Shown piece after piece: positions 8,497-63,930 of a stretch of DNA of 64,000 bases; positions within the stretch are counted from its first letter, which is position 1, and every line of letters begins with the position of its first letter. Below the pieces are notes generated by a model, which did not search any database, was not told the origin of the DNA, and saw only the letters and a program-made list of their open reading frames with translations. The DNA is from Lepidodermella squamata. Its lineage: Eukaryota > Animalia > Gastrotricha. A program made the translations under genes and the position numbers. The stretch covers positions 1,426,001-1,490,000 of the forward strand of contig JBLDXI010000003.1 of NCBI GenBank assembly GCA_047495785.1, read 5' to 3'.

Positions 8497-11400
8497 ATGT
8501 TTTTAAATATTACCTTTTTCGTGTCTGCTTATCTGGCCTTCTTAGCTCAGCAAATATCGATTGTGGCTGGTTGCAGTCCGAGTAATACAGGCAAAGATGC
8601 GGGGCCAGTTACGTATCCCATGGTAAGATTTCCAATTTGACACGAATGAGTTGAAGATTTATATTCTCTACGGCATTCTGATTTCTTCCTAGTACGTTCA
8701 ATGCTTCTCGAATGGAATCGGATCATGTAAAGCCGAATTATGTTCAATCGGAGAAACAGTTGTAAATATCTCTTGAATAATATTTTTACTGAATTTAGCC
8801 CGTAACCCTTGCTCTACATAGATATCTGAAAAATTCTCGGACTTAGCCGTCTGTCAGAAATCTGCGCAGGTTGGAAAGTTTTTCTCCTCTAAATCTGTTA
8901 TCGGCTATTTCTACCATCTAACATAATTTTCAAGCGATTTGTGATTTGTGGTTACGGTAATGACAGCGTCACCTGCACCCCTGCCGTTCCAGGGTGCTCA
9001 GGATCTCTGCGTTTGGTGAAACAAGTGAGGAATTATTAGGATTTAGGGTGAATTATATTTACAACATAATCCGCTGGCCACTCGTCCTCTTCTTAAAATT
9101 TGATGTGTTCTTCAACATGTCAAAAGGACTTACCTGGACCATTATATTGTGAGCAAAGGAATTCCACCAATGGCTCAAGCTGAAAAGATGAAAACTCCAC
9201 TAAATATATTTATACTTATCACAACTAGTTAGCGGCAAATATTTTCGATAATGTCGATCAATGCGCAGCCACAATGAGTGAATTGACATCCGTAAGCGCC
9301 TAATCTGCTGCAAAACCTCCCTCTTTAAGCTTGATGAAATTTTCGCTGCTCTTATTCCCAGAGATATGTCATCTGCGAGAACTCTAATTCAATTCTTGCT
9401 TGCGTATCATCTCAGCCAGGATGTACCAATAATTTGACAGTAAGCTCGAAGGTAAGTTTCACCATTGACAACATACGGCTGCATCGAATGCTTATTCATA
9501 CGCAATGCATCTCCCACATATCAGTACGGAAATCAGTTATTCCAATCTGCTGAACAATGCGCATCGATCGTATCTGCTGACGCAAAGGTATGCTCATGAG
9601 AAAGTCTGCTGAGCTGTTTGTGACCAGCATTTCCAGTCTGAACTAAAGTGGATCCGCTGCTCGAACGGTGTTGGAGGACCCGTCTGCAGATTCAAACAAT
9701 GCGAAGCAGGAGAAATGCGGGCAAGCCACCAATGCAACAAATTAATGTTGGGTTTCACTGTTCAACTAACAGCTCAACTTCACAGCAAACATCAACTTTG
9801 AATCAGAACTGTCCTGCAAAACCACATTATACGTGTGGCAACTCATGATATTTCTTCGAGTTCATAAAAAGTTTCTTCATCAATTAGGTCGCTGTCCCGT
9901 GCTATAATCCGTTAGCGAGCTCCTGGCCCAGCTTTCAGATCGTCCCCGGTTTCGATCACACTTTTCCCGCGGGCTGCAAGTCTCGGCAGGTGCAACTTTG
10001 GGTACGCCCACTTTAAAATCAATCAGAAATTATTTGACTCCACTTTTTTACAGATTGGCAGCAATAATTATTTGCGATCGAGTGGCCCCAACCTAGACGC
10101 TCAGTTGTCAGCATTCAACACGTTCAACATTCAGGTTCTCCAGTATACGGAAAACGTGAACAAAGTGAAAATTTGCTAATGAATAAGACATTTACTGATC
10201 CGAAACAATGTTTTCAGTTGACTTACACAAGGTGTACCCGTGACAATGGCCTGATCTGCAGACCCACTGAGGTTGGATGCTACAACATTGGCGAAGGCAG
10301 TCCTCAGGAGCTTCAGGTCTTTTTTAAATAATAATACGAGTGTATCTCATAGGTGGATATCAGGATGAAAATTGGCCCGAAGGAAGAATATCCACCGATA
10401 TCACTCGTATACGGCATTGTGTTTGAGCTAAATATTGGATCTTTCGGGCGCACGCTGATTGGTCAATCGATCATTACTATGACTCCCGGATGAAACTTGC
10501 AGTAGCGCTATCCATTGAATTTTTTGCTACAAGTATTTTGTTGTGCAGTGATTTGCCACGATTATTATGGATTATTATGGAGTTTACGCTCGTGGTCAAT
10601 GGAAACCGTGGCGGGGGTGTGGCAAGGTCATTTTTGCATAAATATAAAATAATTTATTAGTTGTTTCATCCCGGAGTCATAGCAACAGTAAATCGACCAA
10701 TCAGCGCGCGGGTCGAAGATTAACTTACAACTTGAAACACAATGGGGTTTTAGTGTACAAAACCGACGCAGTATCCGTTGTCATTTGGCAAGCTGATACT
10801 TAGTAACAGTCGGGACATTGTTAATTCAATAAACTACTACCACTAGTGCTGCTTGTAAAAGAAGTAGTGGCTTAAAATTGACAAAATTATCAAGCTCTTT
10901 ATATCAGTTAACAGCAGGAAGAACGTTCTCACTCAACGACTGTCAGTGCTGTCAACGACTCTACGACTGTCAGTGTCATTACGTAAGATAAAAACTGTTG
11001 ATCGGAAAAACTGTTATAACTTATATAACATGTTCATCTTCAATCAGGCCGAAATTCGAATGTGGTACTACTATCAACCTAGACAGCAAATTGGTACATT
11101 GGGCGGTCCTATCATGTGTCTTTCTGACGTCATAACTAAAGTTGACAGCAACAAAGTATGTGACTTTTCCGCGTAGAATCCGCTGACACAGGCATTTGTT
11201 ACCAGCTTTTACCGTCATTCGGGAATTTCTCCGATATTTCAACATGCATGTCAAGCGCCCTCACCGTAAGAGATTCGCCAAAAATTTTAAAAGTAAACGT
11301 AAATGTGTGCCGGTTTTTTTCAGGTGGTTTTCACTAAATACATTCGTTGTTTGACGCGCGGAGGTGGCTATAGCGATTGGGGTGTGGGGCTTACCGCAAT

Positions 11401-11972
11401 CGTTTGCCGACCCGTCGAGGTTGTGGGCAACAATTGTGTTGAATCTGATTACAGCAGATCACCAGTAAGTTGATTCTCATAAAAAAATTAAAACAAATCA
11501 CTAATTTTGCCTTGATACATCCGAAACCATTGTGAAATCTTTACTCAGTCTTGTGCGTTCGTTTAGCATTTAGTAGCTGAGTCGAAAATATTAAATTTGT
11601 CTATGATTGATTACAGGAAGGGGCAATCTATTCAACCGTCTACGATTGCCTAAGGGCCGACGTTGGCCACGGTCCGGTAAGATTTCGGCGGCTTCATTTC
11701 CCTAGAGACCATGAAAATTGTCATTCAGGCCAAATGCTGCTGCTTTGATGTGAATACCGGAATAAGCATATTGATCGGGAGTGTTGTTAACATCACATCA
11801 ACAAACCCCAACTTTTGTTCGTGTCCGATCGGCTACTATATTCCGGTATGTTGCTTATTCGAAGTTTATTGAAACACGCAGATCAGAGATTACTGCAATT
11901 TTCGTTCTCAAGGAACCCTACGCCTATTCAATCGAAATGTTCAGCGATCCGAGCAATTCAAGAAAATGTTAA
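8497..11972 (+). CDS. Cys-rich modular secreted protein A; 17 exons, about 490 aa, all introns phase 0
   Basis: Exons 8497-8622 (signal peptide MFLNITFFVSAYLAFLAQQISIVAGC), 8693-8761, 8822-8869, 8935-9024, 9525-9587, 9649-9720 (GC donor), 9773-9832, 9888-10001, 10054-10164, 10218-10316, 10908-10982, 11048-11155, 11206-11265, 11324-11464, 11617-11676, 11729-11845, 11913-11972. Each is a multiple of 3, stop-free, flanked by AG and GT(GC), and matched by paralogous exons in B, D and E. Confidence 0.85.
10402..10755. mobile_element. MITE-like element with imperfect long inverted repeats, in intron 10 of gene A
   Basis: cattgtgttt...gctgattggtc...tatgactcccggatgaaac versus gtttcatcccggagtcatag...gaccaatcagc...aaacacaatg. 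Confidence 0.6.
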
Positions 11973-12135
11973 CATTTATCCATATTGCACTCGTAATTTT
12001 CTGCTGTACTTTGACGAACCTTGTTAACACACTGACACATAAACACACCAGATTTGTGCCTATACCTGTGACTGCGGAGTGCATGAATAACTTGTTATCA
12101 AAGTGATACAGCACATATTCAATAAAGTTGAAGCT

Positions 12136-23825: not shown

Positions 23826-26800
23826 ATGTATTTGAAGGCGAACTGCTTTTCCTTTTCGCTGGGCTTCCTAGCTCAACTCATACCGATTGCAGTCTGCTGT
23901 AGCCCCAGTGGTCAGCCTGCCGCTAAAGATTCCGGTCAAGGTTCATTGCGTATGGTGATTTTATCTAATCTGCCAATTATACCCTGAATGCATCATGGCT
24001 TTTTCACTAGTATATTCAATGCTTCTCAAATGGAATTGGTTCTTGCAAACTCGATTCTTGCTCAAGCGGCGAAACAGCTGTAATTATATTGTTGTGAGGA
24101 TTTTTGATGCCGGGTATCAACCAAATCTTGGTGTTGTCGTTGAACATCGATCTATTTCGGGCCTTCATTCATCGAGACCAATCCACGATATACACCCGAA
24201 GAGTATATCCGGGATCAAAAATCCTTTTTAATGTTAATTATCTTCTCAGCGAATCATCTCTGCTCACTTTCACTCTAGATATCTGATAAATTCTCGGATT
24301 TAGCAGTCTGCAATAAATTTATTCAGGTTAAATTTCGGTATTTTCTAACTATGAAATAGTTGATCCCGACTCTGCTTTCTAGCGTTACGTGATATGCGGT
24401 CACGGAAATGACAGCATCACTTGCACACCTGCTGTTCCTGGGTGCTCAGGATCTTTGCGTCAGGTCAAGCTAGTGAGTTCCTTCACATCATGATATTATT
24501 AGCCTCTGATTATTAATTATCAAATCATATACTTGAAACTCACTCCTACATTGGAGGAACATATGTAGGAAAAATTCTAAGAAATGTCCTCGTATTTTAA
24601 GATGGAGGTACAGAACTGTATAATTAAACAGATGAACGGTATAAGATTGCCATAATTATCATGAGACGTACTAGGACGCCGGGGCTCGATTAAAACGACT
24701 GATTTTCGCGTTATTTTTTAATGAGGTCCGAATGTCACAACGGCAAAAAATCACCTCATTAGCAGCGATAAGCAAAAAGTCTCATTCACAAAAAGCACGC
24801 GTTTACGCAAAGATCAATTTTTTGCAGCGACCACAAGACCTCGATCTTCATCTCTAAACCTAAAAACGCCGGGTTTCGCGCGCCGTTTCTTGTAATTCAT
24901 TTTCACTTTAAAAAATATTAAATAACCAAAAATAATTAAAATGAATAATTTATAATTTGCCACTCAATTATTATGTTTAGTCCGCGGTCACGTGAATCAT
25001 TCTGCATTATTCCGGCACGTGACGCAGAGAATTTTGTATGGGGAGATAGGAGCCCCGGCGTCCTAGTACGTCTCATGATAATTATTCATGGTCCATGATA
25101 TTTACGTGATATTTACCGTATTTTTTGACCCAGTTTGCGAGTAATATTTTTTACTCTGTCGACCAGTGCGTGGCCACGATGGGTAAATCAACATCGGTAA
25201 AAGCATTATAGCTTCCCATTTGCACCTAAATCTTGAATGTTTTTGGACTTTGTCCCCAATTCAGCAATTCGTCATTTGCGAGAACGCCAACTCTATTCTG
25301 GCCTGCATAGCCTCCCAGCCCGGTTGCACCGGTAATTTGTCTGTCAGTTCCAAGGTGAGAGATAGATGTAGCAAAGGGTTGTATCATGGGCGATAGCAAT
25401 ATTAAATTCTTCAACACGTTAACTGCCAAAAATAGACTGTGAGATCGATATTTGGATCCAAATACTAAGCCTGTCAAAATTTCCTGCACCCAAATTTGGT
25501 GTCAAACTAACCGCTGGGCCATGGCCTACATTTTGCCCTGCGGCGCATCGTTGACCTGAAAAAGGACATTTCGACAGACCCGGGATTTGGATCCAAATAC
25601 CCATCTCACAGTCTATTTTTGGCAGTTAAAGTGTTGAAGAATTTAATATTGCTATCGCCCAAGATACAACCCTGTGCTACGCCTCTCTTTCTCACCTTCA
25701 ATTCTTCCGAAAAGTACGGAAATCAAATATTTCAATCAACTGAACAATGTGCAGTAGCCGTATCTGCCGATGAAAAGGTATGCTTGTGGTGAAAATCTGT
25801 TAGCCGTTAAAGCATTTCAAACTCAACAAGCCCAGGCAGAAATGGATCAGATGCTCGGACGGTATAACACCTGTCTGTCGACCGCAGCAATGCGGAGCAG
25901 GTGAACAAAGGGTGAGCTAATGATAGTTAGCTGTCGACGGGTTTAATTTTTGTTTCAATCGACAGCTCAACTTTACAGCAAATACTAACTTCGAATCTGA
26001 GCTGTCTTGCAAAGCTTCGTTATACGTGAGGATAACCTGATTAGAAGATACATGCATGAAATCCAAGAATCCAACGTTCATTGTTCCTCAGGTTGCTGTA
26101 CCCTGCTATAATCCGACAACTAAGCCTGAATATCACGCATTCGAAATCGTCCCGGGCTTTGATCATATCTTCCCCGCTGGCTGCAAATCTCGGCAAATGC
26201 AAATCGCGCTCTGGGTCTGCTTGATTTCCAAAGCCTAAATTTATAAGCATGATTTTCATACAGATAGGCGACGAATATTTGCGCTCAGACGTCCAAAACT
26301 TCGATGCTCAGTTGTCGAAATTTCCTGTCTGGGACGTTTTGCATTATTACGAGAACTTGAACAAGTTGCGTACGTTAAAATAATTCAGAAATGTTGATCG
26401 ATGCAGTGAGTTTTGAGTTTAGTTGACTTTCACAAGATGCTCCCGTGGCAACACCTTGATCTGCAGACCTATCGAGATCGGTTGCTACAATACCGACCAG
26501 GACAATCCAATGGAGTTACAAGTAATACATCTTGTTTTTCACCATTACTTGAAATATTTCTTTCAAATCTGAATCAAATCACATCTGAGTGTTGCAACCT
26601 TTCCAATTTTTGCTCCAGTTAACAGCTGGACTAACGATGAGATTTAACGAGTGCGAAGTCTATGTAAGTGACCCTGATGAAGATATTTTTGCTGATGTTA
26701 GGTATAAGATATCTATAACCAGTATGAAGAACGTATGTGGTACTATCTTTATTCCGGATTGCCAGTTGGTGCTACGTTCGACGAGCCGATTGCTTGCCAA

Positions 26801-27590
26801 CCTGATTACGTCACAAACCTTGCCGGTTTTCAGGTCTGTCCTTCAGTTAAACCGTATTCCCAGAAACGGACATAGGTATGTTCAACCAGCTTATGTCTTC
26901 ATTCGGAAACTTCGGTGACTACGGCTCCTGCAGATTCAGAGCTGTTACTGTTAGACATTATCTGCAAAGAGATATAAATATATTTTGATACTCTTATAAT
27001 ACTCCCAGCTGGTTTTCTCAAAACACATTCGCTGCTTGATAAAGAGCCCCGTTCGGTGGGACATTTGGGGCTCGGGACTTACTGCAATCGTTTGCCGGCC
27101 TGTTGACATTGTGGGCAACAACTGCCCCGCGTCAGATCTCAGCACTGCACCTGTGAGTCACTCAGATAATATTCTATATTGCTCAACACAGAACTCAGCG
27201 ACAATTTTCTAATTTTAATCTGATCTATTCAAATTCCTTGTTAACTATCATAACAATATAGGAAGGAGGACCATACTCATCTTACTCTGATTGCCTCACT
27301 GCTGAAGTTGGCCATGGCCCGGTATGGTTTTGCTTGGATTTGTTTATAGCGACCTGAAAAATTACCATTTAGGCGAAATGCTGCTGCGCGCAAAATATTT
27401 ATAATACGCAAGGAAGAAAATTGCTCGGAACTGTCGTTAAAAACTCCACTTCTTGTACCTGTCCAAGCGGCTACTATCCGGTATGCTGTGGGTTTAAAAA
27501 TGTTCATGCATAAAATGCACATTTCAATTTCTGTAGCACCCCTGGGCCGTCCAATTTTACAGCGACCCGAGCAATTCTACTGGATGCTAA
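23826..27590 (+). CDS. Cys-rich modular secreted protein B; 17 exons, phase 0; exon 9 donor non-canonical
   Basis: Exons 23826-23954, 24011-24079, 24279-24326, 24383-24472, 25715-25777, 25840-25911, 25966-26025, 26092-26214, 26264-26365, 26423-26521, 26619-26663, 26723-26833, 26890-26949, 27009-27152, 27262-27321, 27373-27480, 27537-27590. Exon-by-exon similarity to A. After exon 9 the sequence is AAG/ttgcgt rather than GT. Confidence 0.8.
24652..25085. mobile_element. MITE with perfect about 35-bp TIRs, in intron 4 of gene B
   Basis: ataattatcatgagacgtactaggacgccggggctc versus gagccccggcgtcctagtacgtctcatgataattat. Confidence 0.85.
25352..25698. mobile_element. Hairpin MITE with about 110-bp arms, in intron 4 of gene B
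   Basis: gggcgatagcaatattaaattcttcaacac...tgccaaaaatagactgtgagat and its reverse complement at about 25603-25680. Confidence 0.8.
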
Positions 27591-31126: not shown

Positions 31127-31683
31127 AAGGGACATTGCGATCAATCTGTTACCGCCTTATAATCTATAAACCTGAGAAAAAAATGACCAGCGTAAACAAT
31201 TTAAGCTAAAATTTTGATATGCATTATTACATCGAGTGGTTCTCAAAACGGATATCCCCGTTGTTCACCAAATTCAGCATGCATATAGAACGCGAGCTGC
31301 TCTTTCACGTGGTATGAGATTTGATGTGGCTAATTGCTGCTCAGTCTTCATCTCATCAAAATAAATGAAATTTGGTTAGAGTGGCTAGGTTACTCGTTGC
31401 CTCTTTGTTCACCAGCCATTTTAAAACTTTAGTATGGAACGGCAATTTACGAGTCTATCGACATGTGCATTTCAACTGTCAACAAGTACACAGCGGTGAC
31501 TTGATAGTGCAGCCTTTCATTGCTTGGTATTATATCCTTTCTGTTTTCAGCGTTTTGTTGTGTGCATTACGGAGAACTCATTACCCACGTGTGCTCCTGC
31601 AATTCCCGGTTGCACTGGCGACTTGAAACCATCAAATCAAGTATGACGCTGATTCTTGAGACCCTTGATTGAATTAGGAATTA

Positions 31684-40195: not shown

Positions 40196-42289
40196 TCTAT
40201 AGAGGTTTTTATCACTGGTCGCCTTTAGCGCAAAATCATCGATATGTGGTGTGCAACAACGCTGACGTTTTGCTGGTCTGTGTTCCAGAGCAACCAGGGT
40301 GCACAGGTGGTCTGTCGCAAGCCAGTCAGGTTCGGATTATTCAAAAATAATTGCACGTATTATCTTTCGTTGCTATTCTTCTAGTATATTTCTCAATCAT
40401 TTACTTCGTTTAGCCAATGCCTCAACGACACAGTAACACTCTCAGCGGTACGTTCCAATCGTCTGAAGAAAGATAGGAATCTCTGTATGACACCAACTCC
40501 AGAAATACCGAATTTGTGACTCTGGATCTGGATTACCAGTCTGCGTCACTGCAGCATTTGGGTGCACGGGTACTTTCAAGCCATCCAGCCAGGTTAATGC
40601 TCAAAACATTCACTGTGTTTCCTGATTAAAATGGTCTCATTATCCTACATAGTTCGGAACACTTACCTACGATACGCCAATTCAGTGCTACGCAGAAGTA
40701 TCCCGCATATCCGAGGTATGACGATTTGCTGTGATTTTACAGTTACTTGAATGGCAGACCGCCATAGCAGCTAATTCTCGAAACAGCGAACGCGACAAAA
40801 CAACGACCGCACAGTATTACACAGTACAGGGAGAATTTTCGCTGTTTTTTCGGTTTCGTTGTTCTGCGCATTCGCTGTTTTGACGTCTACCAGTTTACCG
40901 CCCTGTACAGTGGCAAAACAATTTGATAAACAATTATGCGCTTCTATTAATTATTAATTAATTCAAAATTATTAAGCGTTTTGTCCTCTGTCAATCGAAC
41001 GACGCAATGGTATTATGCATAACTGCGGCACCTGGTTGCACTGGAAACTTGCGTCGCATTGACGAGGTACATAAGTGGCTTTATTTCATTTCTCATGATA
41101 TGGGCAGTATAGAGAACGTTCGATTCGGTGGATCAATGCAACTCGGTTTTGACTGGCTACTATCAGGTGATTTTAGACCCCCTTCTCTCAACAAATGTAA
41201 CACATGAGAATAGCCAACGACAAGATGGATTCGATGCTTAAATGGCTCCCAACCATTCTGTCGCACTAATCAGTGTGGCGCCGGTGAATTTCGGGCGAGT
41301 CTCACTTTGGCTAAAGGTTACAACGCCAAAATTTTAACAGAAAACTTGACCTTGAGTCCTGATCCCCCTAATTTCGCGTAGAGGCTTTCACACGGAAGAC
41401 CTATTTTACTATCTGATAGGGAGCTGAAACTTATGCTGCCATAAAAACCAGCATTTTGACAAAAAAACCACTTGCAAGTTCACGCCTAACCCATATGATT
41501 GTGAGGCTGCACTATGTTGTTTTGGTTTCAGAGCTGAACTCCGTCAGCAAGGTAATCAACAATTTCTAAAGATATTTGTTTTGAAACAGCTCAAATTTAC
41601 GTCAGCGATCACTTTCGAATCCGAGCGCGCATGTCTCTCAACATTATATGCATGTTTTCACATGAAATTTGCTTTAAAAACAACATCATGTTTTCCATTA
41701 GGTGGCGTTACCTTGTTATCAACCAATAGCAGATAGGCCTTACTTCAACGTCGCTCCTGGTTATGATCACGTAGCTCCTCCCGGCTGCAAAGATGGGCAA
41801 GTTATTATACATTTAATTCTAAAGATGCCTACCCCTTATTTGCAATCTGAAAGTGCTGCCTTCACTTCCTTGTTGTCCATCAACTTCTTGTGGGAGCTGT
41901 TATCAAACGCAGAAAATTTGAAATCGGCAAGTTACAAGAAATATCAACGCCAATATCCAACTTCAGCTTGAACTTCAACGAAACAGATGAAATACAAAAG
42001 GACTCGAGGCTGGCTCGCTTTCGCGAGCCGGACGCCTCTCGGCCAATATCGGAGTACTATAACTCGTTATGTTCGACGCGAATCCACTATGTATGTTATC
42101 GTTCGGTGGGACAAAACGAGCCGGACCGGGTAGGATAGCTAGACAGCAAGGGTGAATTTCTAAAATTAAAAAATCCATCCTAATATTTTCACTAACGTTT
42201 TGCAAAAATCATTGCTATTTATTCATTTTTCGATACCGCGATTTATTTCACGCATCATTTTTGCGGTTGCTTTCACGGAAAATTGCTTA

Positions 42290-47382: not shown

Positions 47383-50300
47383 ATGCATGCTCAGGCCATT
47401 TTACTTTTCTTTTCGACTCCTTGGATGCTGCTGGTCGCGGAAGCTTGCAGCCCAACCGCGCCAGCTCGTGATGCGATTAACTCACCCGCTGTCAACCAGA
47501 TGGTAGAAAATCAAAACGACTTCTTCAGTCATTTAAAGCTGTAATTATTAGTACATTCAATGCTACGCAAAAGGCGTCGGAACATGCAGACCGGATGCTT
47601 GTACTCCGGGCGAATCAGTTGTAAGCGTCTCAGTTAACTATTTATAGTAAGGAGCTGCTTAAAATATCAGTCTAACGCTAGATTTCTGACAAATTTTCTG
47701 ATCAAACCGTATGCCAGAGGTTTACAATGGTATTAATCTTTTCTGTTTAATTCTGCTTGTAAATTCGAGATTTTGCAGCGTTATGTCATTTGTGCCTACG
47801 GGAATGACACATTGACGTGCACACCGGCTGTTCCGGGTTGTTCCGGGGCTATGCGCTTCGACACACAGGTTACACCAGCATATTCTCAACATCCTGTTTT
47901 AATGATTGATGTACATTTCGGCAGTATGGAACTTCAATTTACGACTCAGTGGATAGTTGCTCTTCAGCTGTAAGCAAATATACTGCGGTAGGTAACTTCA
48001 GACATTTGCTCAAGAAAGCTCCAGTCACCCTAATTGTGGGACATCATCACCCTAAGTAGGGTGACTTTTCTTCTCCATTGCTGAAATTTTTATTGTAATC
48101 TAGCGGTTTATCGTTTGCGATTCGGAGAACTCAATACTAACATGCACCCCCGTCGCACCTGGTTGCACTGGTGGCTTGCGACCGTCCAGCCAGGTATATT
48201 TATATTTGTGAGGGATAAGAATTCAATCGAAGAAAGTTGAAGCTGAGTATGGAGATTTGGCAAAATTACGCACCCCCTAGCGTTCTAAAATGTTCAAAAA
48301 CACAAGGGAGCTCTATGATGATTGCAAATTATGGGATTTTCTCCCTCATTTCCCCCAGTTTCATCATTGGTGTTTATCAGTTCTTTTTAATGACCAAATA
48401 ACCAAATGAATCAGTTTTATTTTTCGTCCTCCGTAGGCATGTGATGTTAATGTTAGAGAGTAGAAAAAAAGGCCTTACCCGTGAGGGTTTAGGGGACGGC
48501 TGACGACAGGCGATCGGCTACAGGGGCCGACAGATCGGTCGCGAACAACCTGCTTTTGCCCAAAAATTCATAATTTTCGATGCTATTACACACTAATTGC
48601 CATTCATCCCGATCTCTGGCAGTTATTTCCGCTAATTTTAGATCCGCAATTTTGTGAATTTCAGTGCGTCGCATTAACAGGGTCGACTTACGAGGTCTCC
48701 CGCGTCTAACTGGCTCATTTGGGTTTTTAATATATTTCACATGAATATCGAACAAACCAATTTTAAGAAGACTCCTTTTCAAGCTATCGGTCCAGCGGGT
48801 TGGCGGTTTACCGCGAGGCAAGTACCAACTCGAGTCGACCGCTTTCCAATGATATATGGCATTCGTGAGACTTTCAGTGTCATACTCGTCTTGGCGAATA
48901 ATGTGCCCGAAATATTTCAAACGATGCTTTTCAATCATTTTACTTAATTCCAAAACGTCACAGATCAATTTAATATCGATGTTAGGTATATAATCTGTTC
49001 TAAAAAATCCCATAATGGTTCTGAGCCAGCGCATGAAAGTGACATTTAACCTTTGTTCCTGCTTAGTAGTTAGGTTCCAGGTTTCACAGGCGTAGGTGAC
49101 GGTAGGAATTACCACACATTTTAAAACTTTCAATTTTGTGGCTAGGCTTATATGTTTTCTGTTACACATCAGCTTGTTAAGAGCACCAAAACAGCTGCCA
49201 GCTTTCGCTAGGCGAGCTTTGATTTCCTCGTCCATTTTACCGTCTGATGTGATTATACTACCTAAATATTTAAAAGATGTAACTTTCTCCAATAATTTTC
49301 CATCTAGTTCCAGTTGATAATTGTTATCCTCACCATATCACCTTATACTGGGTTTTGCTAACACTAATTTTCAGACCAAGCTCCTGGCAGGCCTTGTTGA
49401 AGACATCAAGTAGTAATTTAATTTCCTCGTGGCTCATACCAATTAAAGTGCCGTCATCTGCAAATGCTATCAGATTCAAAAGCTGCTTACCAGTGATGGG
49501 GAAGCCACCCGGGGTGTCCCTCAATTTTTGAAAAATTTTATCGAACGTCGCGATAAAGAGTAGCGGGGACAGGGGGCAGCCCTGTCTTAAGCCCCTCCTT
49601 ACCACGAAAAAGTCCGAGAACTTATTGTTAATCCTAACCGCTACCTTGTTGAATTTATAAAAACTTTTGATAGCTTGGATCAGATTCGCATCGACACCTA
49701 ATTCGCATCGAGTGCAGCCCAGACCTTTTCGCGATCGATCAGGTCGTAGGCCTTCTCCAGGTCAATAAAAACCCAATGCATTTCTTTATTGCCGCAGCAG
49801 ATGACCTTTTCGATTAATCGCCGTAGAATGAAAATGCAGTCTCTACAGCCTTTTCGAGGTTGAAATCCAAATTGCCGCTTTGAGATATTGGGCGGGCCAA
49901 TAATTTTCCGCAATTTCCGCTCTAGAATAATAGCATTTCTTTTTATATTCAGCAGTTTATAGCAGTTCTTTTTATATCAAACGTTTTAATTATAGTTCGG
50001 CTCTCAAATCTACGAGTCTGCAGCGCAGTGCCGAAACGCCATCTCAGGAAACGTCATCTCTGGAAATGCAATCTCTGGGAATCAGACAGTTGGTCATCGA
50101 CTTGCTCAAGTTTCTGGGTTATTGATATCTTGAATTTAGCGATGGATCCGATGCTCAGATGGCACGACTCCATTCTGCCGTGTGAATCAATGCAGAGCCG
50201 GCGAAGTGCGAGTAAGCTTGCAAGATACATATATCGGGCTAATTTAACCCGCTAAGTTTAATGGAGGAATCCTATATACTTGGCGGGTTTTATTAGCCAA

Positions 50301-53300
50301 ATAACGATATATCAAATCAATTGAAATTCTCTTGAATTCTGAGTTTAAGTAGATCTCTACATCAATCGGTTAATTCAGGTTTTATGAAGCATGGGTATCG
50401 TGTAAAAGCTAATGTGCAAAAACAAGGAATCGTTGATTTTTGAACTCTATACAACACTGGGACCAAATAAGCATTGAAGTGTGAAACTACTAACATGCCA
50501 CTCAATTTTTCAGCTCCAGTTCACTTCGACGACCATCTTCGAATCCGAAAGCGCTTGCCTTTCTTCCTTATATGTAAGCTTTATCAATTTAAGCCGAATA
50601 ACGCCTTTGTACTTGCGTATTCTATCCGGCCTCAGTTTATAAAGGATAATGAATCGAGAGCAAAGGGCATAGTTGAGATTCCGCATTTTATAACGGCGAG
50701 CTGAGGCGTCGCTATTATTTCTTTTCTCCTTATCCTAGAAAACTCGGTTGCGTTCGGGTTGCGACGAAACCAACGAACGAGAACGCTCGTTTTCGTGTAC
50801 CTACAATAGAACCATGATTTTAATTTTCAGTGCTATTTCCCAATTAGTCGCGCAAATATTTCCTTTCCTTGTTCATTTCGCAGCTCCAATTTATTTTATA
50901 TTTTTATCTTGACCGTAACTTTCAACAGATTGCAGTTTCTTGTTACAAGCCATTAACAAATCCCGTCTATCCCGTCTATTCGTGGTACGAAATCGTTCCT
51001 GGCTTCGATCACACTTTTCCTGCTGGTTGCAAAGCTAGCCAAGTGCAGATCAGTATCTCAGGGGTAAACATTTCCATCTTAATATATAGATAATATATTA
51101 AGCACAATTCCATTTAAAATATGAACGCTATTATTTATTCATTTACTTTGAGTAATATTTCAGCAATTTGTTTTCAGGTCCCGCGCTTCTTGCATTCCGA
51201 GACGGCTGACATTTCCGTCATTAATATAGATCCGTCCTATCCGTACTTCTTAATGCACGACAATTATTTTAATGGAATCCTAATAAATCCGGAAAACCTG
51301 AAAGTGAGTGATTCTCTGGTGGAATTCAATCTCAAGTAATCGATTGTTTGTTAATCAGATAAGATACAAGAGGTGCGTGCGCAGCAACGGGTTAGTATGT
51401 AGACCAGTGGAAGTGGGCTGCTTCAACCCTGATCAGCAAGAATTTCTGGTAGGGCTCGCGGTTCAACAATTACGGTTTCATTTATGCTTCCGCAGCTTAA
51501 AACAACTGCAGACCAAACATTCAACTACAATGACTGCCAGAACAACATCGTTAGTCAAGCTTTTCATTGTTAAAAAGACAAGACTATTTCCTACTGCTCA
51601 GAATATGGCCATCTTCAGTTATTACGATCTATCAACCTCGGCTCCACTAGAATCGTCTGTCCTTCGATGCGATAGGGATTTCGCCCTTGAAAGAAGCAGC
51701 AAAGCCATTGTTGTAAGTAATTATTAATTTCAACTACAGATATAACGAATATTTGTATATTGCAGTTTACCAGATATGATTCTTACGCGAGTTGTGAGAC
51801 TAGTGTTCGAAATATGGTATCCCATTCGTCGATCATTCTTAATTTATATGTTTTACACCTTGAGGATCCACGCCTATACGGCATAGGCTTAAGCCGATAT
51901 TTTCAAGTCCCATAGTGAATAAACCGTGAGGGTCACTATGGATATGGATCATCCTATATTAATCGATTGCTGTAATCAGGGGCTTTCAATCGATGTCCGA
52001 TCGAAGTCAACTTGACACATTCAGAATCACGCCGAAAACACGAATATTGCAATTTTCGACTTTGTAAAGATCTTATTCCCAAAACTTCAGCGCACAATTC
52101 GATTGAGCATTAATCGATTAATCAATAAATTCGAGCATTAATTAATAGCCCTCGATTACAGCAATCGATTAATATAGGATGATCCTTAGTCCTTAGTGAT
52201 CCTCGCGGTTTGGTCTACATGGGAATTGAAATCATCGCCCATCCCGTATAGACATAAACCCCTCATCGGCGTACAACATATATATCATTTCTATTCAACA
52301 CTATTATATCCACAGAAATACTCCAGCTTCGTTCGATGTCTGTACAATCGTGATCTATGGATTCCGACACTGGTGCTCATATCATGTCGTCCTACAGAGA
52401 TAGTAGGAAATTCTTGCACCGCAAACGACATTAGCACGATTCCAGTAAGCCGGTTAAGCCATTCTTGAATTTCAGTCTCTATTTGAAAACTTTGAACACA
52501 TAAATTAGGGATACAGTGCTCCCTCGATTCTCGATTAGTGCACGGGGTTGGGAGCTTATCTGGGGATACAGCTAAGGAAATAGGGCTGTTTTTAGAGATT
52601 GCGATGTATCCATAGAGAAAAATGAGAAAAAGGTCATTTCTTACTCTATCGATGTATCATATATATGTAGCTACGGTTTTGTCTTAGCTACTGCGGAGAC
52701 GATGCTTTTTGGTTGTGGTTAGCCATTCGAGGCAAACCCGAAATCATTTGTGCATTGATCTGAAAATTATCAGATAAAAGCATTTCTAACGAGTACCAAA
52801 GTGAAAGTGAACTTTAGCCAACAATTTACATTCCGATCCATTCCAAAGGAATCCACTCGCTTATTCTGACATGTTTCGGCTTTTATTCAGCCATTTTCGG
52901 GGACAAGCAACAATAAGGGAAATCAACAATCAAGTTTCAGAGCTATTATCGAGCAAGTATTACATACCAATTTTGTCACCAATCGTTTCTTATGAGTATC
53001 AACAATTTTGAATTTTAACAAGCGTGAAAGCTTCGTTTAGCGATTCGAAACTGGGTTCAGTGGTTTTTTGTGTAATGACATAGGAATGAAATTTCGCTAC
53101 ATCATTTTTTGTTATTTTGGTCAAAATAATGACAATTACGTCGTATACTATTTAGAACCGATCTCTCCTGACACAATTCTGCCAACAAAATATGCCATCC
53201 ATTCTTTTTTTGGCTTCTGAAAGCCTAAACCTGGAAAATCTAATTTTGAATGTTTTCCATCTGACAGGAAGGAGGGCCTTACTCTTCCACATACGACTGT

Positions 53301-53628
53301 CTAACGGCCAATGTCGGACGGGGTCCGGTAAGGAGACGTTTCCCGAACAAAATGAAGATGAAATGAAATCTTCGACAGGCTAAATGCTGCTGTGACAAAA
53401 GCGGAACGCAGCTGACTGGAACCGTGCAGAAATTAGCCGTGCCAAATTCGAGCAGAGAGGGTTTAACTACATTCTGCTCTTGTCCGGAAGGATGGTCGGT
53501 AAGTCAAATCTCTAAGCATCTGTCAATTATCACATTATCGTCAGCATCGTTATTTATCGTTAGTCTATTTCAAGGTTGACAAGGGACAAGTGGCGTTTTA
53601 CGCCTTACATTTTACATGTTACTTGTAA
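47383..53628 (+). CDS. Cys-rich modular secreted protein D; 19 exons, all phase 0
   Basis: Exons 47383-47502, 47552-47620, 47682-47729, 47779-47868, 47925-47987, 48104-48193, 49996-50088, 50140-50211, 50514-50573, 50929-51063, 51178-51303, 51359-51448, 51497-51550, 51602-51712, 51766-51816, 52316-52444, 53268-53327, 53379-53498, 53575-53628. Canonical GT-AG throughout, no internal stops. Confidence 0.85.
48390..49935 (-). mobile_element. 5'-truncated, degenerate RTE-like non-LTR retrotransposon in an intron of gene D
   Basis: RT motifs QFGF, FIDLEKAYD, GLRQGCPLSPLLF, FADD, FKYLGS across three ORF pieces separated by stops. Confidence 0.9.
51908..52224. mobile_element. MITE in an intron of gene D
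   Basis: ggatcatcctatattaatcgattgctgtaatc versus gattacagcaatcgattaatataggatgatcc. Confidence 0.75.
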
Positions 53629-55497
53629 TAATATCTCACCTTGAAAATGACTCAACAAAGTTGAATCCGAGTTCTCCTCTATTCCAGTTGTCCAGTTTCA
53701 AAATGTCTGTATCCTTTTCATCAGCGTCCCTACTGGGTGGCGGACTATTTTTTCAGCGCTTCGGACTCATCGACAACATGCTATCTATGAAAGTTCCCTC
53801 TCGAGCAAATGAACTATAAAACGGAGTGCGATAGATAGTTGAAATGATGTGTGCTACACTTCCTAAAATTAGCATCATGTAATCACATTCTATATGAATC
53901 AACAACGTTCCTTCTATTTACGATTCAAGCCAGAGCCTTTTATCTTTTATCACACGTGTGACTAATACTAATAAATGATACGTGGGATGCTTTTTGCCTT
54001 TTAGTAACCGTTGTTCTACAATCATTACACTTACGAAAAAGGAGAAATCTTCGCACAGCTATTTTTAAACAGCAATACTTCGACGGAATGCTTTGACCGG
54101 GAAGCCTGTGACTATGGCTGTGGCTTTTTGTAAATCAAAGTCTGCCATTTCTTTCTGGCGCTTAGCGAGAGTGATAAACGGCCTTGGCCCTTAACGCGCA
54201 ACGGCGAGCTAAAATTTAGGACACGGGACTATTAGGCTCAAGAATGATAAAATAGAAAAAAATGAAGTTCGAGCGTGGAAAAATAGCTGTCACAGAGAAT
54301 CGAGCCCGAGGCAACAGCAAAGCAAAATCTTAGACAGTCTATGTCTACCTGTAGCCGGAGCTCATAGTAGGACCGCGGAAATGGTAGGGATAACAAAAAT
54401 CGACATAAGGCCTTCCTTTGACTGAGCTCACCCTACGGACCAATGTAAATAGTATGGATGATCCCTGCCATCCCTAGCGGACTATCGGGTTCGCTATCGG
54501 GTGTTTGCGGTGTACTGGTATATCCTCTACATGGCTACGCAAGCCTCGGAGGCTTCGATTCCTGGCGACATCAGTCTTTACTGAAACAAATCGAACCCGA
54601 TGAGTGGCATCCATCCTGCACTCGCTTTTGGGCGATGACATTCGCCGCTTAACAAAATTAAATAGTACCGATTTGCGGGTAATGGGCTAAAATGATGCGA
54701 ACACCTGACCCAGATTCCAGCATCCCTCATTTGGGTTCCAGTTTACGCTCATGGCCTATAAAGAAAGGATATGAGCGCATCAGTATGTTCTCGCAGGAAT
54801 TTGCTACCCATTTTATTTAATTACTTATGTCTAACTGTCACGCAAAAATTAGGAGTCCTTGGCGGAGAACGATAATTGAAAGGGCGGCGACGAGTGTGGC
54901 AGCGGCAACATCTTCTACCTTCAACCGGAAAATTTCAAATATGTAAAAAATGCTTTTTCTATTTTTCTTGAAAACGAGGTCAAAAAGGCGTTTTATGGAC
55001 GCAGTAATTTGTTCTTGGCCGGCGATTATTAAACATTTCAGTAACAATCCGGCTACGCAATTCCCGCAGCCTAACAGCAACAAAAAGCTACTGTTTTATC
55101 GCCCATTTCTGGCACGTTTTCTGTTTAAATTGTCGCTTGTCGTTTTCTAACGAAGCTTCATTAACCTTTCCTCTTTCCATGTTTCCCCTCCTCGCACAGC
55201 AAATTCCTTGAATCCGCTGAAATCCGCGGGCAAACAAGGCTAATAGTAGTAGAAATCAATTAAAGCAAAAATACATCTCCACCTAAATACAAATAAGATA
55301 TTAAAGATTACGCCGTAAAAGACGACAAATGATTCTATCATGAAATGCATGGTATCGAGTAATAATTTAGCAGCGTGCTGTTCGCGCGCGTGTAAAGAGG
55401 GGCGACGAGAGATTTCGAGATACGTGGTGCCCTCGACGGTTATTCTTAAACTCTCTCAGAAGGTTTTTACCACAACGATACTCAAGACGTATTTTCG

Positions 55498-58400
55498 ATG
55501 AATTCAAAACGAGCGGTTTTGCGTAGTGTTCTGCTTTATTTCCTCTCCGCAATACCAGTTGTTCTTAACGCTTGCTCCTCGACTGGAGTATCATCTCAAG
55601 ATTCTAATAACGGCATCTCCGTATTTCACATGGTAAAGAAGCATTTTTACACCTTTTTCGATTCATTATGTTCACATCCGCTTTGAAGTATGTGCAATGT
55701 TACGCGAACGGGGTTGGGACATGCAGGGCAGATTATTGCCGATCAGGCGAAACAGCGGTAATGCCAGTATTTATACGCCTAATTTCCTCAAATCTGAGTA
55801 AAATAGATTTCTGGAAAATTTCCGGAACAAAGCTCTTGTCAGAATTTAGCATCGGTATGCAGCTAATTTGGCATCTGAGATTCTTATTATAGGGTGTTTT
55901 CAAGCGTTACGTCATCTGCATTGTTAATGCTGACACTCCAACCTGCACGAATGCTGTCCCAGGATGTACGGGGGCCATGCGTTTTCACGGCCAAGTTATT
56001 CCCGCCCGTAAATCTATGACACTGAATAATACATCAATTCGATTAAAACCAGCTCAGCTTACAAATATACGAATCAGCAGAACAGTGTAGATCAGCGATT
56101 CCAAAGAATTCGACCGTATGTTGCAAGATTCAACCAACTTAACAACATTTTATTGAATATTAATTCAAGCAATATGTAATTTGCGAGACTGAAGATTCGT
56201 TACCTGCATGCGCGGCGAGTTGCTCGGGGATGCTAAAGCCATTCGATAAGGTGAGTTTCGTAGTCATGATGTGTTTCCCCAAGCCATTTAAATGGACATT
56301 TACCATTATTGAACCGTTCAGTATGCCGCGCTGACCTTCAATAATACAAGCCACTGCGCGTCTTTCATCTCTGAAAATATCAAGGTTTGATTTCAAGACT
56401 AAAAGGAAATCCTCAGTAGTAAGCAAGGCAAGAGGCGGGTAAATCGTTATCAAATAATGTGCTGAGCCTTCTACATGTTCTCGCTCGTTTTCAACCTCCG
56501 ATAAATTTCTATATCCTCGATCCCTAACATGTGTTTGTGTGACATTGTTATATGAAAATCTTTTGAATATATAGCGATGGCTTCGCTGTTCAGATGGAAC
56601 CTCTCCAGTTTGCCGTCTGAATCAGTGCGCAGCCGGTGAAGCGCGAGTAAGTTTGGATTTGTTATTATAATTGATTATTAGAAAATTCGAGAAATATGTT
56701 TTCCCTCCGAGGAAATTAATTAGGATATTCAGACTTAATTCAGCTAATCCACAATCCACATCTCCGTGTCTTGAAGGCAATGGTAACGCAGACTCATCGG
56801 CAGCTTTCTGCTAAGAACGAAAAAATGTCTCTATTTTTTTCTAATAATAATACTATCCACTATCAAATACTGAAACTGCGCAAACACTAATTGACACTGC
56901 TAACTGCTGAAATCACCATTCAATTGCTTCTGGACGCGAAAAAACCGTCCGAAGAATCGTGATCCTGAATTAATTCAAAAATCGCGTGACAAAAATCGCA
57001 AAACGACGTTTTATAAGAGCTTTTTTACGCCATGTGCCATGTTCCCATTACATTGGAAAAAATCAGAGTCTCATCCCGTTGGTACCGCATCCCACCATAC
57101 CCTATATCAATTGCTAATTCCTCACATCTGATGCAATTTTACGCTAAAATTACCAAGCTTCAATTGCCAAATTCAGCACGCTATGCCAGCCATATCGAGA
57201 GAGCTTCGCCATGGCTGTTGATTGCTGATTTTGAATGCAGAATGCAGTGATTTAGCTCAATAATGGCTGTGAAGTGAATAATGAGTGCGAATTGAGGTCT
57301 AATAAGTCGCCCATCTCTAGAAAGTACTCCCTACATAACTGCGCGAGAGCAGGGCTGGAGGCCGTGCAGTTATCCCGGGAAGCAGTAGTCAAGAGCGAAT
57401 AAAGAGCTTGTGATGCGCCTCGCTATTTTTTTCTTGGTTGCTACGGCGACAATGTTTTTTTTGGTTAGCCATACTTTCAAAGACCAATCATTTTTTAAAA
57501 TGATTTTACTTTTCACTGCCGCGCAGGAAAGCACAGAAAATTGCTCAGCGAGTTACCATCGGGGTTTTTGTGATTTCTCGAACAAAATTTGTATATTTTC
57601 GCCAAAATTGCAAATATGGCATGGAATATTCTCCCGGTAGGTTTACTAAAGAATAGGATTTTCAATCTAAAAGCTGCTAGATGGCAATTGTTGGGACACA
57701 CTGTGAAGGCCTAAATAATCATTTCGGTAATCAGTAGCCAGAGATGTGATTTTAAGATGCTGTTCAAGAAGCACATATCCGCTATTACATTCTCAGCCAA
57801 AGCCGTCAACATAATTCGGCAAGTAACATTGCATTTTGGATAGCCGACTGGACAAAATTACTTTAACAAACGTTAACTAATTAGACCAATAATTATTTCA
57901 TCTTATAACGTCTTTATGAAATAAAATGTCTCGAAACTGCACAAGTATCCTTCAAAAAATACTGTGTTTAATTACACGGGGTCAATAATGCACCACGATT
58001 CGATGCCAACATCTATCGGTTCTGTACTCAGTAATTATTTCAAATTAAAAAATAATTTTTGTAATCAATTTAAAACGCGGGACCGGTTTTTAGCTGGCAG
58101 TTTGCTAGGCAATTGCACTTATCAAGGGTCTAGGGTGCAGTTACCGAGGGAGCACTGTAGTAGGAATTTTCGGGGGTTGGTAACTTCAAAGAAACAATCT
58201 ATAAAATGTTCCTACTTTTCGTCAAACTTGATAATTGATCTTTCAATTCTAGCTCAAATTCACTCTTACAACCACGTACGAGACAGAAAATGCATGTCTT
58301 TCTTCTCTATACGTAAGTTTTGTTATTGGTAGAATATTATTCGTAGTGGTATAGTGACGAAGTAGTTGCTTTTCGTGCCCTCGAAAAATTTGCTTATGCG

Positions 58401-60311
58401 AGTTTCAGGTTTTAAAGCCCTCCACTTTTGATTTCGGCGGCAGAATTGTTATTGCATTTTGAAATAATTGCATTATTCTCTTGACAGGCTGCTGTTTCAT
58501 GTTATCAGCCAAAAACTGACCCTCCATCGGTGTACGTCGAAGTTGTACCTGGTTACGATCATACGCTTCCTGCTGGTTGCAAAGCTGGGCAAGTGCAGAT
58601 CAGCCTCGCGGGGGTAACTCTAAATAATAATCTCTTGAAATATACACTTCAGGCGTTGAGGCCTGATACCGCACGCTTATTAATGAAAAAACTGAAAAAG
58701 CTGCCGCTAAATGCCAAAACAGATCCTATAATGACATAAGTTTTTGACGAATTCGATCTGTGTGCGACGTTCAGGGGGAATGAAGGGGGAGGGGCAGCGT
58801 CCTCCCAGCTCGGCCTGCGGGCCAGACAACAATGCTATGACGATCGCAATTTCTTTTCAGATCGCCCAACGATACACGTATTCGCGAAATGGTGATATTA
58901 CATTCCTTTCCAATCCAAGTCCAATGGATATGATTGGGATTCTCGAAAATGAGGAAAACTTGAGAACGGCATGTGCGATGAAACCGAAGCCTGATGAATT
59001 TCTTATCGCTTTTTTCGTTCAACAGATGAAGTATAAAAGATGCACTCGGGCCATGCTATTAGTATGCAGGCCAGTGGAAATAGGCTGCTTCAACCCTGAT
59101 CAGCAAGAATTTTTGGTATGTAATCACCTATCACCTGGCTAATTCCCCGTGCCGTTCCTTTTCTAATATTTGATTTATAGCTTGTATCAACCGCTGCCCA
59201 AACGTACAGCTTCAAAGAATGCCGAAACTTGGTAAGTCTGCGATCTCGCCACATTATCTACTAACATGATTTTGCAAATAAGGCCGTTCCGTACAGTCAT
59301 TATAGTTTGGAAAGCACCAGACCGCTGGAAACAAGGGCAGGATACAATCCATTGGACTGTTCCAATGATTGGAACTCCCAGAATTACAGCTACTGGATCC
59401 AGGTATTTTAATACATACAGATCATTGAAGCCAATAAATCTAAATGTCATTATACCTAGCTGGAAAAATTCAATACGTTCGATGATTGCTGGTATTATAT
59501 CTTCCATACAGTTCGTTATTTCTTTGCCTTTCACCTATTGCTTTTCATCGCATTCTGCGACTTGTTAACCATGAAATATGAGTGAAATTGTGAGCATTTC
59601 CTGATTTCTGGGTGAACCTTTATCACAAGTGGATAGCAGCTCCAAAAGCTATTGCAGGCTTGAAGGCTAAAATCCACCGGTGTACCCCTATGATAAGGCT
59701 GATGATATCCGGTGCCAACAACTGTAAAAACTAATTTTTCTTTTCCTGAAATGATCTTAGAAGATATTCACAAGCTTCGTGCGTTGCCTTTACAAGACAC
59801 CCAGCAACATACAAAACGCTATCGTTTGCCGTCCTACTGACATCGTGGGAAATACGTGCAGCCAATATGATGTTAGCAAGACGCCGGTGAATTCCTTACT
59901 TGAAAGTTTGCATCCATAATCTAATCTTTTACAGGAAGGAGGGCCATATCCAAGTACATTCGATTGTCTAAGTGCCAACGTAGGACAAGGGCCGGTAAGA
60001 AGAAATCACTGTTTTCAGCTATAACCAACGATTCTAGAACACACTTCTTTCCGCAGGCGAAATGCTGCTGTCGGAAATCAAATGGTGAGCAAAAATTGAT
60101 TGGAACTGTACAGAATGGCCCCACGCCGACTGCGGGTAACCTATCACCTTTCTGCGTTTGTCCAGATGGAACGACAGTAAAATTAAGAGAATACGGCAAT
60201 ATTTATTTACATAAACTATTTTGTATTCAATAGCGTACAACAATGGGATTATATGACGAGTATTACAGCACCTCATCTACGTCTGCTGACTCTGACTGCT
60301 TTTTTCCATAG
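55498..60311 (+). CDS. Cys-rich modular secreted protein E; 19 exons, all phase 0
   Basis: Exons 55498-55632, 55689-55757, 55807-55854, 55905-55994, 56053-56115, 56170-56250, 56322-56384, 56575-56646, 58253-58312, 58488-58613, 58861-58968 (GC donor), 59026-59115, 59181-59231, 59283-59402, 59460-59510, 59761-59886, 59935-59994, 60057-60176, 60234-60311. Confidence 0.83.
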
Positions 60312-60879: not shown

Positions 60880-61000
60880 CTGATGCCAATGGAGAGCAAA
60901 AATTGGTAGGAACAGAATGGCCCTACGCCGACTACGGGTAATCTTTTTGTACGTTTTCATCCAGATGGAACAACATTAAAATTATTGGAATACGGAATAT
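60880..61000 (+). pseudogene. Degenerate duplicate of the penultimate (AKCCC) exon of gene E
   Basis: aatggagagcaaaaattggtaggaac..gaatggccctacgccgactacgggtaa..ccagatggaacaaca matches about 60081-60200 with indels. Confidence 0.7.
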
Positions 61001-62880: not shown

Positions 62881-63091
62881 TGGGAAACTACGTATAAATC
62901 TTAGCTACGACACATTATTTGCATTATTTGATTTTTTATTCAAATTTGCAATTTAATGTGCGTGTCTGAAGTTAAACTGTCTGTCTGAAGTTAAACTAAA
63001 AGCCTCATTTTTGACTTTCAAATCGCATCTTTTCAGCCTGTATCCGAAAATAATTTCTGACCGATGAAAATAAGCTGAAACATGTTTACAG

Positions 63092-63930
63092 GCTGCGGTT
63101 CCATGTTATCAGCCATGCACTTATCCCTTGCCGTTATTCAGCGTTGTTCCAGGCTATGATCATACGCTGCCTGCCGGTTGCAAAACCGGCCAAGTGCAGA
63201 TCAGCATCACAGGGGTAATTCCTAATTCTCAATCAACATAGCGCCTCAACATAGGTAGATATCATGATAAAGATGGCTGTATAACTCTTAACAGATTACC
63301 AAACGATACTCGCAAAACGGTGACATCACATTCCTTTCCAGTCCTACTGTCATCAGCGCGGAAAACTTGAGAACCGCAAGTGATACTAGTAGACCCTGTT
63401 CAATTTCAAATCGCTACTTTCGTTCAACAGATTAAGTACAAGAGATGCACGCGAAACTTGGCATTGGTGTGCAGACCAGTGGAAATAGGCTGCTTCAACC
63501 CTGATGGAGGGGGCGAATTTTTGGTATTTAATGACCTGTCGCCTTCGTTAATTTCTGATGTCGTTCCCTTTCTCATTATTACATTGATTAAAGCTTATGA
63601 CAACCGCTGGCCAAACTTTCAGCTTTCAAGAATGCCGAAGCTTGGTAATTGCTGCCGCCATGCGAACCGTTCGAATTTGTTATTCCGCTGCTTAGATTGT
63701 TCCGTTCAGTTATTATCGATGGGAACTCAACAGCCCGCTGGAAACAAGGGCAGGATTCAATCCATTGGACTGTGCCAATGATTTCTACACTCAGGAGCTA
63801 TAGCAACTCCATGCTGGTATTCTGTGTTTGATATTTGAAACCGATTAATCTAATTGAATACATATATATATGCATATAGCTGCGAAAATTCAATACATTC
63901 GACGAATGCTGGCTTAATATTTTCACTACG
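63092..63930 (+). pseudogene. Cys-rich family copy F: exon types 8-13 (E-like), headless, continuing beyond the window
   Basis: Exons 63092-63214, 63295-63375 (GC donor), 63431-63523, 63594-63644, 63696-63816 (one extra base gives a stop), 63880-63930. Confidence 0.7.

Follow-up and report, generated by a model that had tools for sequence, protein, structure and literature searches.

A tandem family of predicted secreted, cysteine-rich proteins built from two-exon modules bounded by phase-0 introns in the gastrotrich Lepidodermella squamata

In the micro-exon genes (MEGs) of schistosomes, micro-exons make up most of the coding sequence and mostly measure 36 bp or less, and variation of the products by splicing has been shown experimentally. 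The exons of these genes range from 3 to 81 bp and are separated by long introns, the genes being lineage-restricted and poorly annotated (bioRxiv 10.1101/2023.06.21.545858). The mate-recognition protein genes of the rotifer Brachionus (mmr-a/b), which encode secreted or surface glycoproteins, are intronless; their repeats of 87-92 aa hardly differ from one another and have a helical prediction, cysteines being unmentioned in their description (PMC2746195). In metazoan extracellular proteins, all the shuffled domain types have been reported to be class 1-1, for reasons that are debated (PMC8001218). Here, we describe a tandem gene family in a 64,000-nucleotide stretch of the genome of the gastrotrich Lepidodermella squamata (the window, C3:1426001-1490000, where C3 is contig JBLDXI010000003.1 of GCA_047495785.1, an assembly of 121 Mb in 151 contigs). 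With a probability of about 0.7, we read it as a secreted, disulfide-rich, beads-on-a-string protein family (~520-550 aa) that evolves by birth and death together with duplication of exon pairs, and whose role may be in binding or as a stalk.

Gene models were built from open segments bounded by AG and GT (or GC), together with paralog conservation and further copies from elsewhere in the genome. A motif scan of the window shows that the exon motifs recur in a fixed order and on the + strand only, and a tblastn search of the window with the protein of the first copy (G1) gives colinear exon-sized matches at six loci, with E-values down to 1e-58. Four paralogs (G1, G2, G5 and G6) are intact, each of them with 19 exons, the first starting from an ATG, and without internal stops. 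Exon length is a multiple of three in all 76 exons of these models, and their introns are of phase 0 in 72 out of 72 cases, 70 being GT-AG and two GC-AG. Internal exons measure 45-144 nt (median 78) and introns 47-1802 nt (median ~60). The predicted products, of 522-548 aa, contain 35-39 cysteines and carry a signal peptide, that is, a hydrophobic N-terminus ending in A or G and then C-S-P-S/T, the rest of the protein being devoid of hydrophobic segments. The first-pass annotation had proposed a tandem family of secreted cysteine-rich proteins at this site, and the ordered motifs, the six loci, the signal peptides and the four 19-exon models bear this out. Its count of at least six paralogs stands as six or seven loci with colinear exons, of which only four are intact, and its 16-18 introns, all placed between codons, stand as regards the phase but become 18 in every intact gene; the 'CRP.E.GC' exon is followed by a short exon of B type (10908-10982 in G1) that is easily missed.

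Sequencing run X1 corresponds to DNA, since its Logan contigs at the locus include the introns and have no joints at exon borders. These contigs are identical to G1 in exons and introns alike, and the assembly of this gene is therefore reliable. A defect initially suspected in G2, a mutated exon-10 donor (ATGCAA), was rejected, because a conserved donor sits 12-18 nt downstream of the ATGCAA position in all the copies. Besides the two GC-AG introns of the intact genes, GC donors are found at 63376 (G7) and at 41295 and 41650 (decayed copy); the donors of these five introns comprise GCAAGC, GCATGT, GCAAGT and GCGAGT, and paralogs have GT at the corresponding sites. Intron 12 of G1 contains, at 10384-10755, a very high-copy short repeat, probably a MITE-like (miniature inverted-repeat transposable element) insertion, where Logan word depth reaches ~19,000 versus 26-44 in the flanks and where many contig ends and joints are located.

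The predicted proteins consist of a signal exon followed by nine units (M1-M9) of two exons each, with three cysteines in exon A and one in exon B. In M1-M4, M6 and M8, exon A has the skeleton aromatic-x-x-C1, 7-18 residues, C2, 4-9 residues, C3, and exon B the skeleton aromatic-x-S/D-x3-C4; the modified units are M5 ('CY.P..PGYDH..GC'), M9 ('AKCCC..C.CP.G') and also M7. All A exons align on C1, C2 and C3. In profile-profile comparisons the homology between M2 and M3 is certain (99% probability, E 7e-19), and weaker links connect M6 with M8 (80%), M4 with M6 (42%) and M1 with M4 (23%), while M5, M7 and M9 may be degenerate or elaborated versions of the core unit. The canonical number of 35 cysteines leaves an odd one directly after the signal peptide, which could possibly form intermolecular bonds. 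Two tandem duplications lie within B exons: 'DCQC..DCQC' in G1 exon 13 (10908-10982), which adds four cysteines, and 'AISGN', present three times, in G5 exon 7 (49996-50088). AlphaFold2 was run on two natural reading frames, belonging to the copies on C9 and at C3:1.81 Mb, in which the intron between exons A and B keeps the frame and contains no stop codon, using an alignment of exon fragments. Both runs predict the same topology: exon A forms a beta-hairpin and a third strand (strands 2-7, 11-16 and 25-27), and exon B forms a helix. The predicted local distance difference test (pLDDT) score is 67-82 over the genuine parts and falls under 50 in the insert encoded by the intron.

The same module exists elsewhere in the genome in an unsplit form. 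The A-exon profile finds 137 sites genome-wide, many of them on other contigs and in open frames of 160-245 aa. Nine of these frames (L027-L035) were compared; one, L031, is near-identical, and the scan for the C-type lectin domain (Pfam Lectin_C) covered the other eight. All eight scanned frames encode a complete, unsplit A+B module followed by Lectin_C in the same exon. A hidden Markov model (HMM) of the spliced A+B modules of G1, G2, G5 and G6 matches the eight lectin-linked frames over HMM positions 2-46 with 17-30 bits, the maximum in 2000 shuffles being 10.6 bits. Since the model of spliced modules matches unsplit copies over nearly its full length, exons A and B would form one domain and the intron that separates them would be real. 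A phase-0 acceptor is located 0-3 codons before the module-start aromatic in eight of the nine module-plus-lectin frames, the exception being L032, whose nearest in-frame phase-0 acceptor is further upstream; in G1, G2, G5 and G6, all the units follow a phase-0 intron and also end at one. These data point to a four-cysteine unit that is employed as a building block throughout the genome and has class 0-0 behaviour. Several module-lectin exons stop right after the lectin domain, and the C19 frame reads module, lectin, module. The tandem family and the lectin-linked proteins share a module of ~45-50 aa with the four-cysteine skeleton within ~45 residues, and the phase-0 intron before the module, but the members of the tandem family have neither a lectin nor any other known head domain, have A and B split by an intron, and contain three strongly modified units (M5, M7 and M9) out of nine.

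The ratio of nonsynonymous to synonymous substitutions (Ka/Ks) is 0.14-0.36 in nine paralog pairs, with Ks from ~0.6 to >1.4, three deeper pairs being saturated and giving no ratio. G1 and G2, with 64% amino acid identity, have a Ka of 0.26, a Ks of ~1.4 and a Ka/Ks of 0.18, and the ratio for G5 and G6 is 0.20. In an alignment of eight genes, 24 of the 26 cysteine columns are invariant compared with 71 of the 332 other columns, both variable cysteine columns being due to one decaying copy; in the Ka/Ks comparisons, 27/27 aligned cysteines are kept in most pairs. Splice sites are also retained between paralogs, whose introns show no alignment beyond the level of chance. The low Ka/Ks and the invariance of the cysteine columns argue that G1, G2, G5 and G6 are selected coding genes, in which the scaffold of cysteines and aromatic residues is probably maintained by purifying selection while the loops drift.

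Clusters of the family are located on C3 at about 1.26-1.31, 1.37-1.39, 1.43-1.49, 1.53 and 1.81-1.83 Mb, and also on C9 and C17; a triplet of 17-exon genes at C3:1.81 Mb belongs to the same family. The M2/M3 unit is present in two copies in the window genes (19 exons), in one in the genes at C3:1.81 Mb and on C9 (17 exons), and in at least five in the decayed G3/G4 copy, and distal relatives carry five or six repeats of the M5-type exon. The family also includes pseudogenes and copies cut down to the N-terminal part, and it shows insertions of transposons and small duplications inside exons. It can be proposed that the array grew by tandem gene duplication, on one occasion together with a neighbouring class C G protein-coupled receptor (GPCR) gene, that whole exon pairs would have been gained or lost between copies, a process that, with phase 0 at all the boundaries, leaves the reading frame intact, and that some copies decayed. 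The uniformity of phase would follow from descent from one two-exon unit flanked and split by phase-0 introns. It has to be noted that the 18 phase-0 introns of each gene are, therefore, non-independent events, and that phase 0 is a condition that permits expansion and no sign by itself of an active mechanism of diversification. The resulting proteins would be extracellular and binding or stalk-like, and perhaps covalently linked through the odd cysteine that follows the signal peptide.

The coordinates of all these elements are collected in Table 1. The decayed G3/G4 copy lacks exons 1-3 (the signal-peptide exon and M1) and exons 13-19. In G7, a frameshift separates 'CRPT' from 'GNTC' in exon 15 (in L025); exons 1-9 were not found, and a FAR1/MULE-type (Mutator-like element) sequence lies directly upstream. 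Transposon open reading frames (ORFs) in the window comprise a MULE/ZSWIM-type transposase (34-2274), a GIY-YIG (Penelope-like) element (13425-15877) and FAR1-type DNA-binding ORFs (61682-62772), the latter occupying the expected place of the 5' half of G7. The N-terminal-only copies, five or six in number and none of them followed by a set of 3' exons, may be truncated duplicates or short members of the family. A role for those at C3:1.37-1.39 Mb as alternative 5' cassettes, in a protocadherin-like arrangement, was considered and rejected, there being no 3' exon set downstream.

Table 1. Location of the family members, their exons and related elements (positions refer to the window unless a contig is given)
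Feature	Position	Strand	Remarks
G1	8497..11972	+	Intact, 19 exons, 535 aa, 39 Cys, signal peptide
G1 exons 1-10	8497-8622; 8693-8761; 8822-8869; 8935-9024; 9229-9291; 9362-9451; 9525-9587; 9637-9720; 9773-9832; 9888-10001	+	
G1 exons 11-19	10054-10134; 10218-10316; 10908-10982; 11048-11155; 11206-11265; 11324-11464; 11617-11676; 11729-11845; 11913-11972	+	
Example two-exon module	8935..9291	+	A exon 8935-9024, phase-0 intron, B exon 9229-9291; module alignment
G2	23826..27590	+	Intact, 19 exons, 522 aa, 37 Cys
G2 exons 1-10	23826-23954; 24011-24079; 24279-24326; 24383-24472; 25134-25196; 25265-25354; 25715-25777; 25831-25911; 25966-26025; 26092-26214	+	
G2 exons 11-19	26264-26335; 26423-26521; 26619-26663; 26723-26833; 26890-26949; 27009-27152; 27262-27321; 27373-27480; 27537-27590	+	
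G3/G4 decayed copy	31433..42090	+	At least five A/B module exon pairs, then M4, M5, exon-12 remnant
G3/G4 A exons	31551; 35175; 40255; 40503; 40977	+	Second Cys changed to Trp at 35175
G3/G4 B exons	31433; 34976; 40385; 40653	+	
G3/G4 WIRC exon and next exons	41214-41294; next 41590-41649, 41702-41800	+	
G3/G4 exon-12 remnant	41984-42075	+	Frameshifted, Cys lost
G5	47383..53790	+	Intact, 19 exons, 548 aa, 35 Cys
G5 exons 1-10	47383-47502; 47552-47620; 47682-47729; 47779-47868; 47925-47987; 48104-48193; 49996-50088; 50140-50211; 50514-50573; 50929-51063	+	
G5 exons 11-19	51178-51303; 51359-51448; 51496-51549; 51602-51712; 51766-51816; 52316-52444; 53268-53327; 53379-53498; 53725-53790	+	
G6	55498..60311	+	Intact, 19 exons, 536 aa, 35 Cys
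G6 exons 1-10	55498-55632; 55689-55757; 55807-55854; 55905-55994; 56053-56115; 56170-56250; 56322-56384; 56575-56646; 58253-58312; 58488-58613	+	
G6 exons 11-19	58861-58968; 59026-59115; 59181-59231; 59283-59402; 59460-59510; 59761-59886; 59935-59994; 60057-60176; 60234-60311	+	
GC-AG introns of intact genes	9721 (G1 intron 8); 58969 (G6 intron 11)	+	Donors GCAAGC and GCATGT, respectively
Exon-17-type remnant after G6	60882..60975	+	'NGEQKLVGT...GPTPTTGN...PDGTT' split over two frames
G7	63092..64000	+	5'-truncated copy running off the window end
G7 exons 10-14	63092-63214; 63295-63375; 63431-63523; 63594-63644; 63880-63930	+	GC donor GCAAGT after 63295-63375
Module + lectin frames (L027-L035)	C4:318k, 41k, 1.50M; C36:225k; C40:316k; C29:2.896M; C19:2.965M; C46:807k; C64:103k		Single exons
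N-terminal-only copies (L014, L016-L018)	C3:1371631-1392714	-	M1 to M3
N-terminal-only copies (L014, L016-L018)	C3:1308518-1309590	+	M1 to M3

The searches for known relatives used exon-sized pieces (20-50 aa) or multi-exon reading frames, queries with little power for distant relatives, including those in other species. Within this scope, Pfam-A gave no match for the exons, the multi-exon frames or the module part of the lectin exons, and neither the PDB sequence profiles nor a protein language-model atlas gave anything usable. An exon-15 profile (44 positions) run against 1.84e9 proteins produced 0 matches, not even to itself, the proteome of this genome being outside that library; a word-index protein search with the 150-aa C9 reading frame and the 245-aa module-lectin-module exon returned nothing, and a metagenome scan with an exon-4 profile revealed no relative. 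The PAN/Apple domain, a PAN_4 family being present nearby, was tried and rejected, given that hhalign of the core-module alignment with 19 PAN_4-type proteins yielded a probability of 0.1% and that Pfam gave no PAN match. What emerges is an apparently secreted orphan family, seen so far only in this genome, whose module is without recognised relatives.

This last point has an alternative, namely that the module belongs to a known small disulfide-rich domain but has diverged so much that the exon-by-exon searches missed it. The shortness of the query pieces speaks for it, as do the end of exon 17, which has the EGF-like form C-x-C-P-x-G-[YW] and a sub-threshold match to a JAG1-like EGF2 (E 0.027), and the predicted beta-beta-beta-alpha order, a common small arrangement; we regard it as unlikely. 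That the array could instead be non-functional duplicated DNA made of pseudogenes is hardly credible: two of the six window loci are clearly decayed, and the contig carries several N-terminal-only copies further upstream, but four copies have kept 19 open exons, all the splice sites and the scaffold cysteines at Ks values of ~0.6 to >1.4 with a Ka/Ks of ~0.2, while their introns are not alignable beyond chance. A more elaborate proposal, which was that of the first-pass annotation, is that the exons, uniformly of phase 0, serve as cassettes for splicing, giving each gene a repertoire of isoforms as in schistosome MEGs. In its favour, every internal exon is of 3n length and phase 0, so that no skip would shift the frame, some of the donors are weak or of the GC type, and exon skipping in animals is generally favoured by symmetric modules of 3n length (PMC8001218). 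However, skipping a single exon would remove three cysteines or one and leave unpaired cysteines, so that only exon pairs could vary, pair-wise skipping alone leaving an even count; the range of Ka/Ks gives no sign of diversifying pressure; variation between copies is fixed in the DNA as whole exon pairs; and the exons, at 45-144 nt, are not micro-exons. We consider this model quite unlikely, and splicing-based diversification less likely than ordinary birth and death with exon-pair duplication.

The neighbourhood of the genes suggests a further alternative. Paralogs of a class C GPCR (ANF_receptor + 7tm_3) are present at 4563-7158 (+) and 43369-46551 (+), directly upstream of G1 and G5, and a third lies at C3:1399673-1401826, near the upstream family cluster; they are 55-72% identical to each other, a divergence similar to that between G1 and G5, which suggests that the GPCR genes were duplicated together with G1 and G5. 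From here, the family proteins could be imagined as ligands or co-factors of the adjoining receptors, the co-duplicated pairs constituting a pheromone- or taste-like ligand-receptor system. The position and matching divergence of the receptors fit this idea, but no GPCR is seen in the 20-30 kb around the copies at C3:1.81 Mb and on C9, and adjacency after segmental duplication needs no functional link, for which reasons we judge it highly improbable. A combination of both models, in which the exon pair would be a lineage-specific class 0-0 mobile module, spliced as cassettes, with isoforms maybe matched to the co-duplicated class C GPCRs for ligand-receptor recognition, is very improbable.

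Several points weigh against the birth-and-death reading of an orphan family made from a single type of unit. The exon-sized searches could have missed a known family that is only distantly related, or relatives outside this species, and profile-profile comparisons give no significant similarity between the core module and M5, M7 or M9. The fold models are of middling confidence, from frames that retain the in-frame intron and an alignment assembled from exon fragments. A few donors are ambiguous (that of exon 10 and that of G5 exon 7), yet all the alternatives are of phase 0. Finally, the splice sites are predicted from their conservation among the paralogs and from the unsplit homologue, the sole matching sequencing run being of DNA.

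In addition to the GPCR genes, the window contains, at 28158-29342 (+), an ORF free of introns that encodes two cellulose-binding modules of the fungal CBM1 type. The only named relatives of the C-terminal half of this ORF are Brachionus proteins (~54% identity), some of them with PAN_4. Adjoining it, at 29690-31126 (+), is a PQQ_2 beta-propeller ORF, weaker copies of which are found at C3:1.304-1.316 Mb. Both ORFs are candidates for horizontal acquisition.

The family behaves as the classical mobile modules of animal extracellular proteins do, but with class 0-0 in place of 1-1. With class 1-1 modules such as EGF, Sushi, Ig and FN3 it shares small, mostly beta, disulfide-stabilised units strung in secreted proteins, bounding introns of one phase, duplication and insertion free of frameshifts and varied gene contexts. 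It differs from them in having phase 0-0 at all the boundaries, including the intron after the signal-peptide exon, in that the unit itself is split by a further phase-0 intron, and in the absence of sequence or fold matches to those domains. The earlier observations that cysteines and splice positions are conserved while loops diverge, and that only symmetric phase-0 exons are used, against the class 1-1 rule of animal extracellular modules (PMC8001218), have been upheld, as has the lack of a recognisable domain, none being revealed by Pfam, PDB, fold and large protein searches with exon-sized queries. The schistosome MEGs have in common with the family their secreted products and strings of short symmetric (3n) exons, but this is not a family of that type, because its exons (45-144 bp) are too long and its introns (~60 nt) too short; moreover, MEG products are small and are not made of cysteine modules. 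As for the Brachionus mmr genes, secreted or surface products, tandem units varying in number between paralogs and the lack of Pfam matches are shared, whereas the genes described here have 18 introns and their units are old, diverged, cysteine-based and split by introns.

The claim for this family alone is modest, that is, an orphan secreted family that appears to be under purifying selection. The family is nevertheless real, the domain from which it is made is undescribed, and its pattern of intron phases is notable. Provided that RNA data and other species agree, a class 0-0 extracellular module would be a natural counter-example to the 1-1 rule, and it could be used to test whether this rule stems from a real constraint or from the places where introns happened to insert, such as glycine-rich linkers and signal-peptide cleavage sites. 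In any case, the family flags a kind of gene that annotation based on ORFs or on homology will miss.

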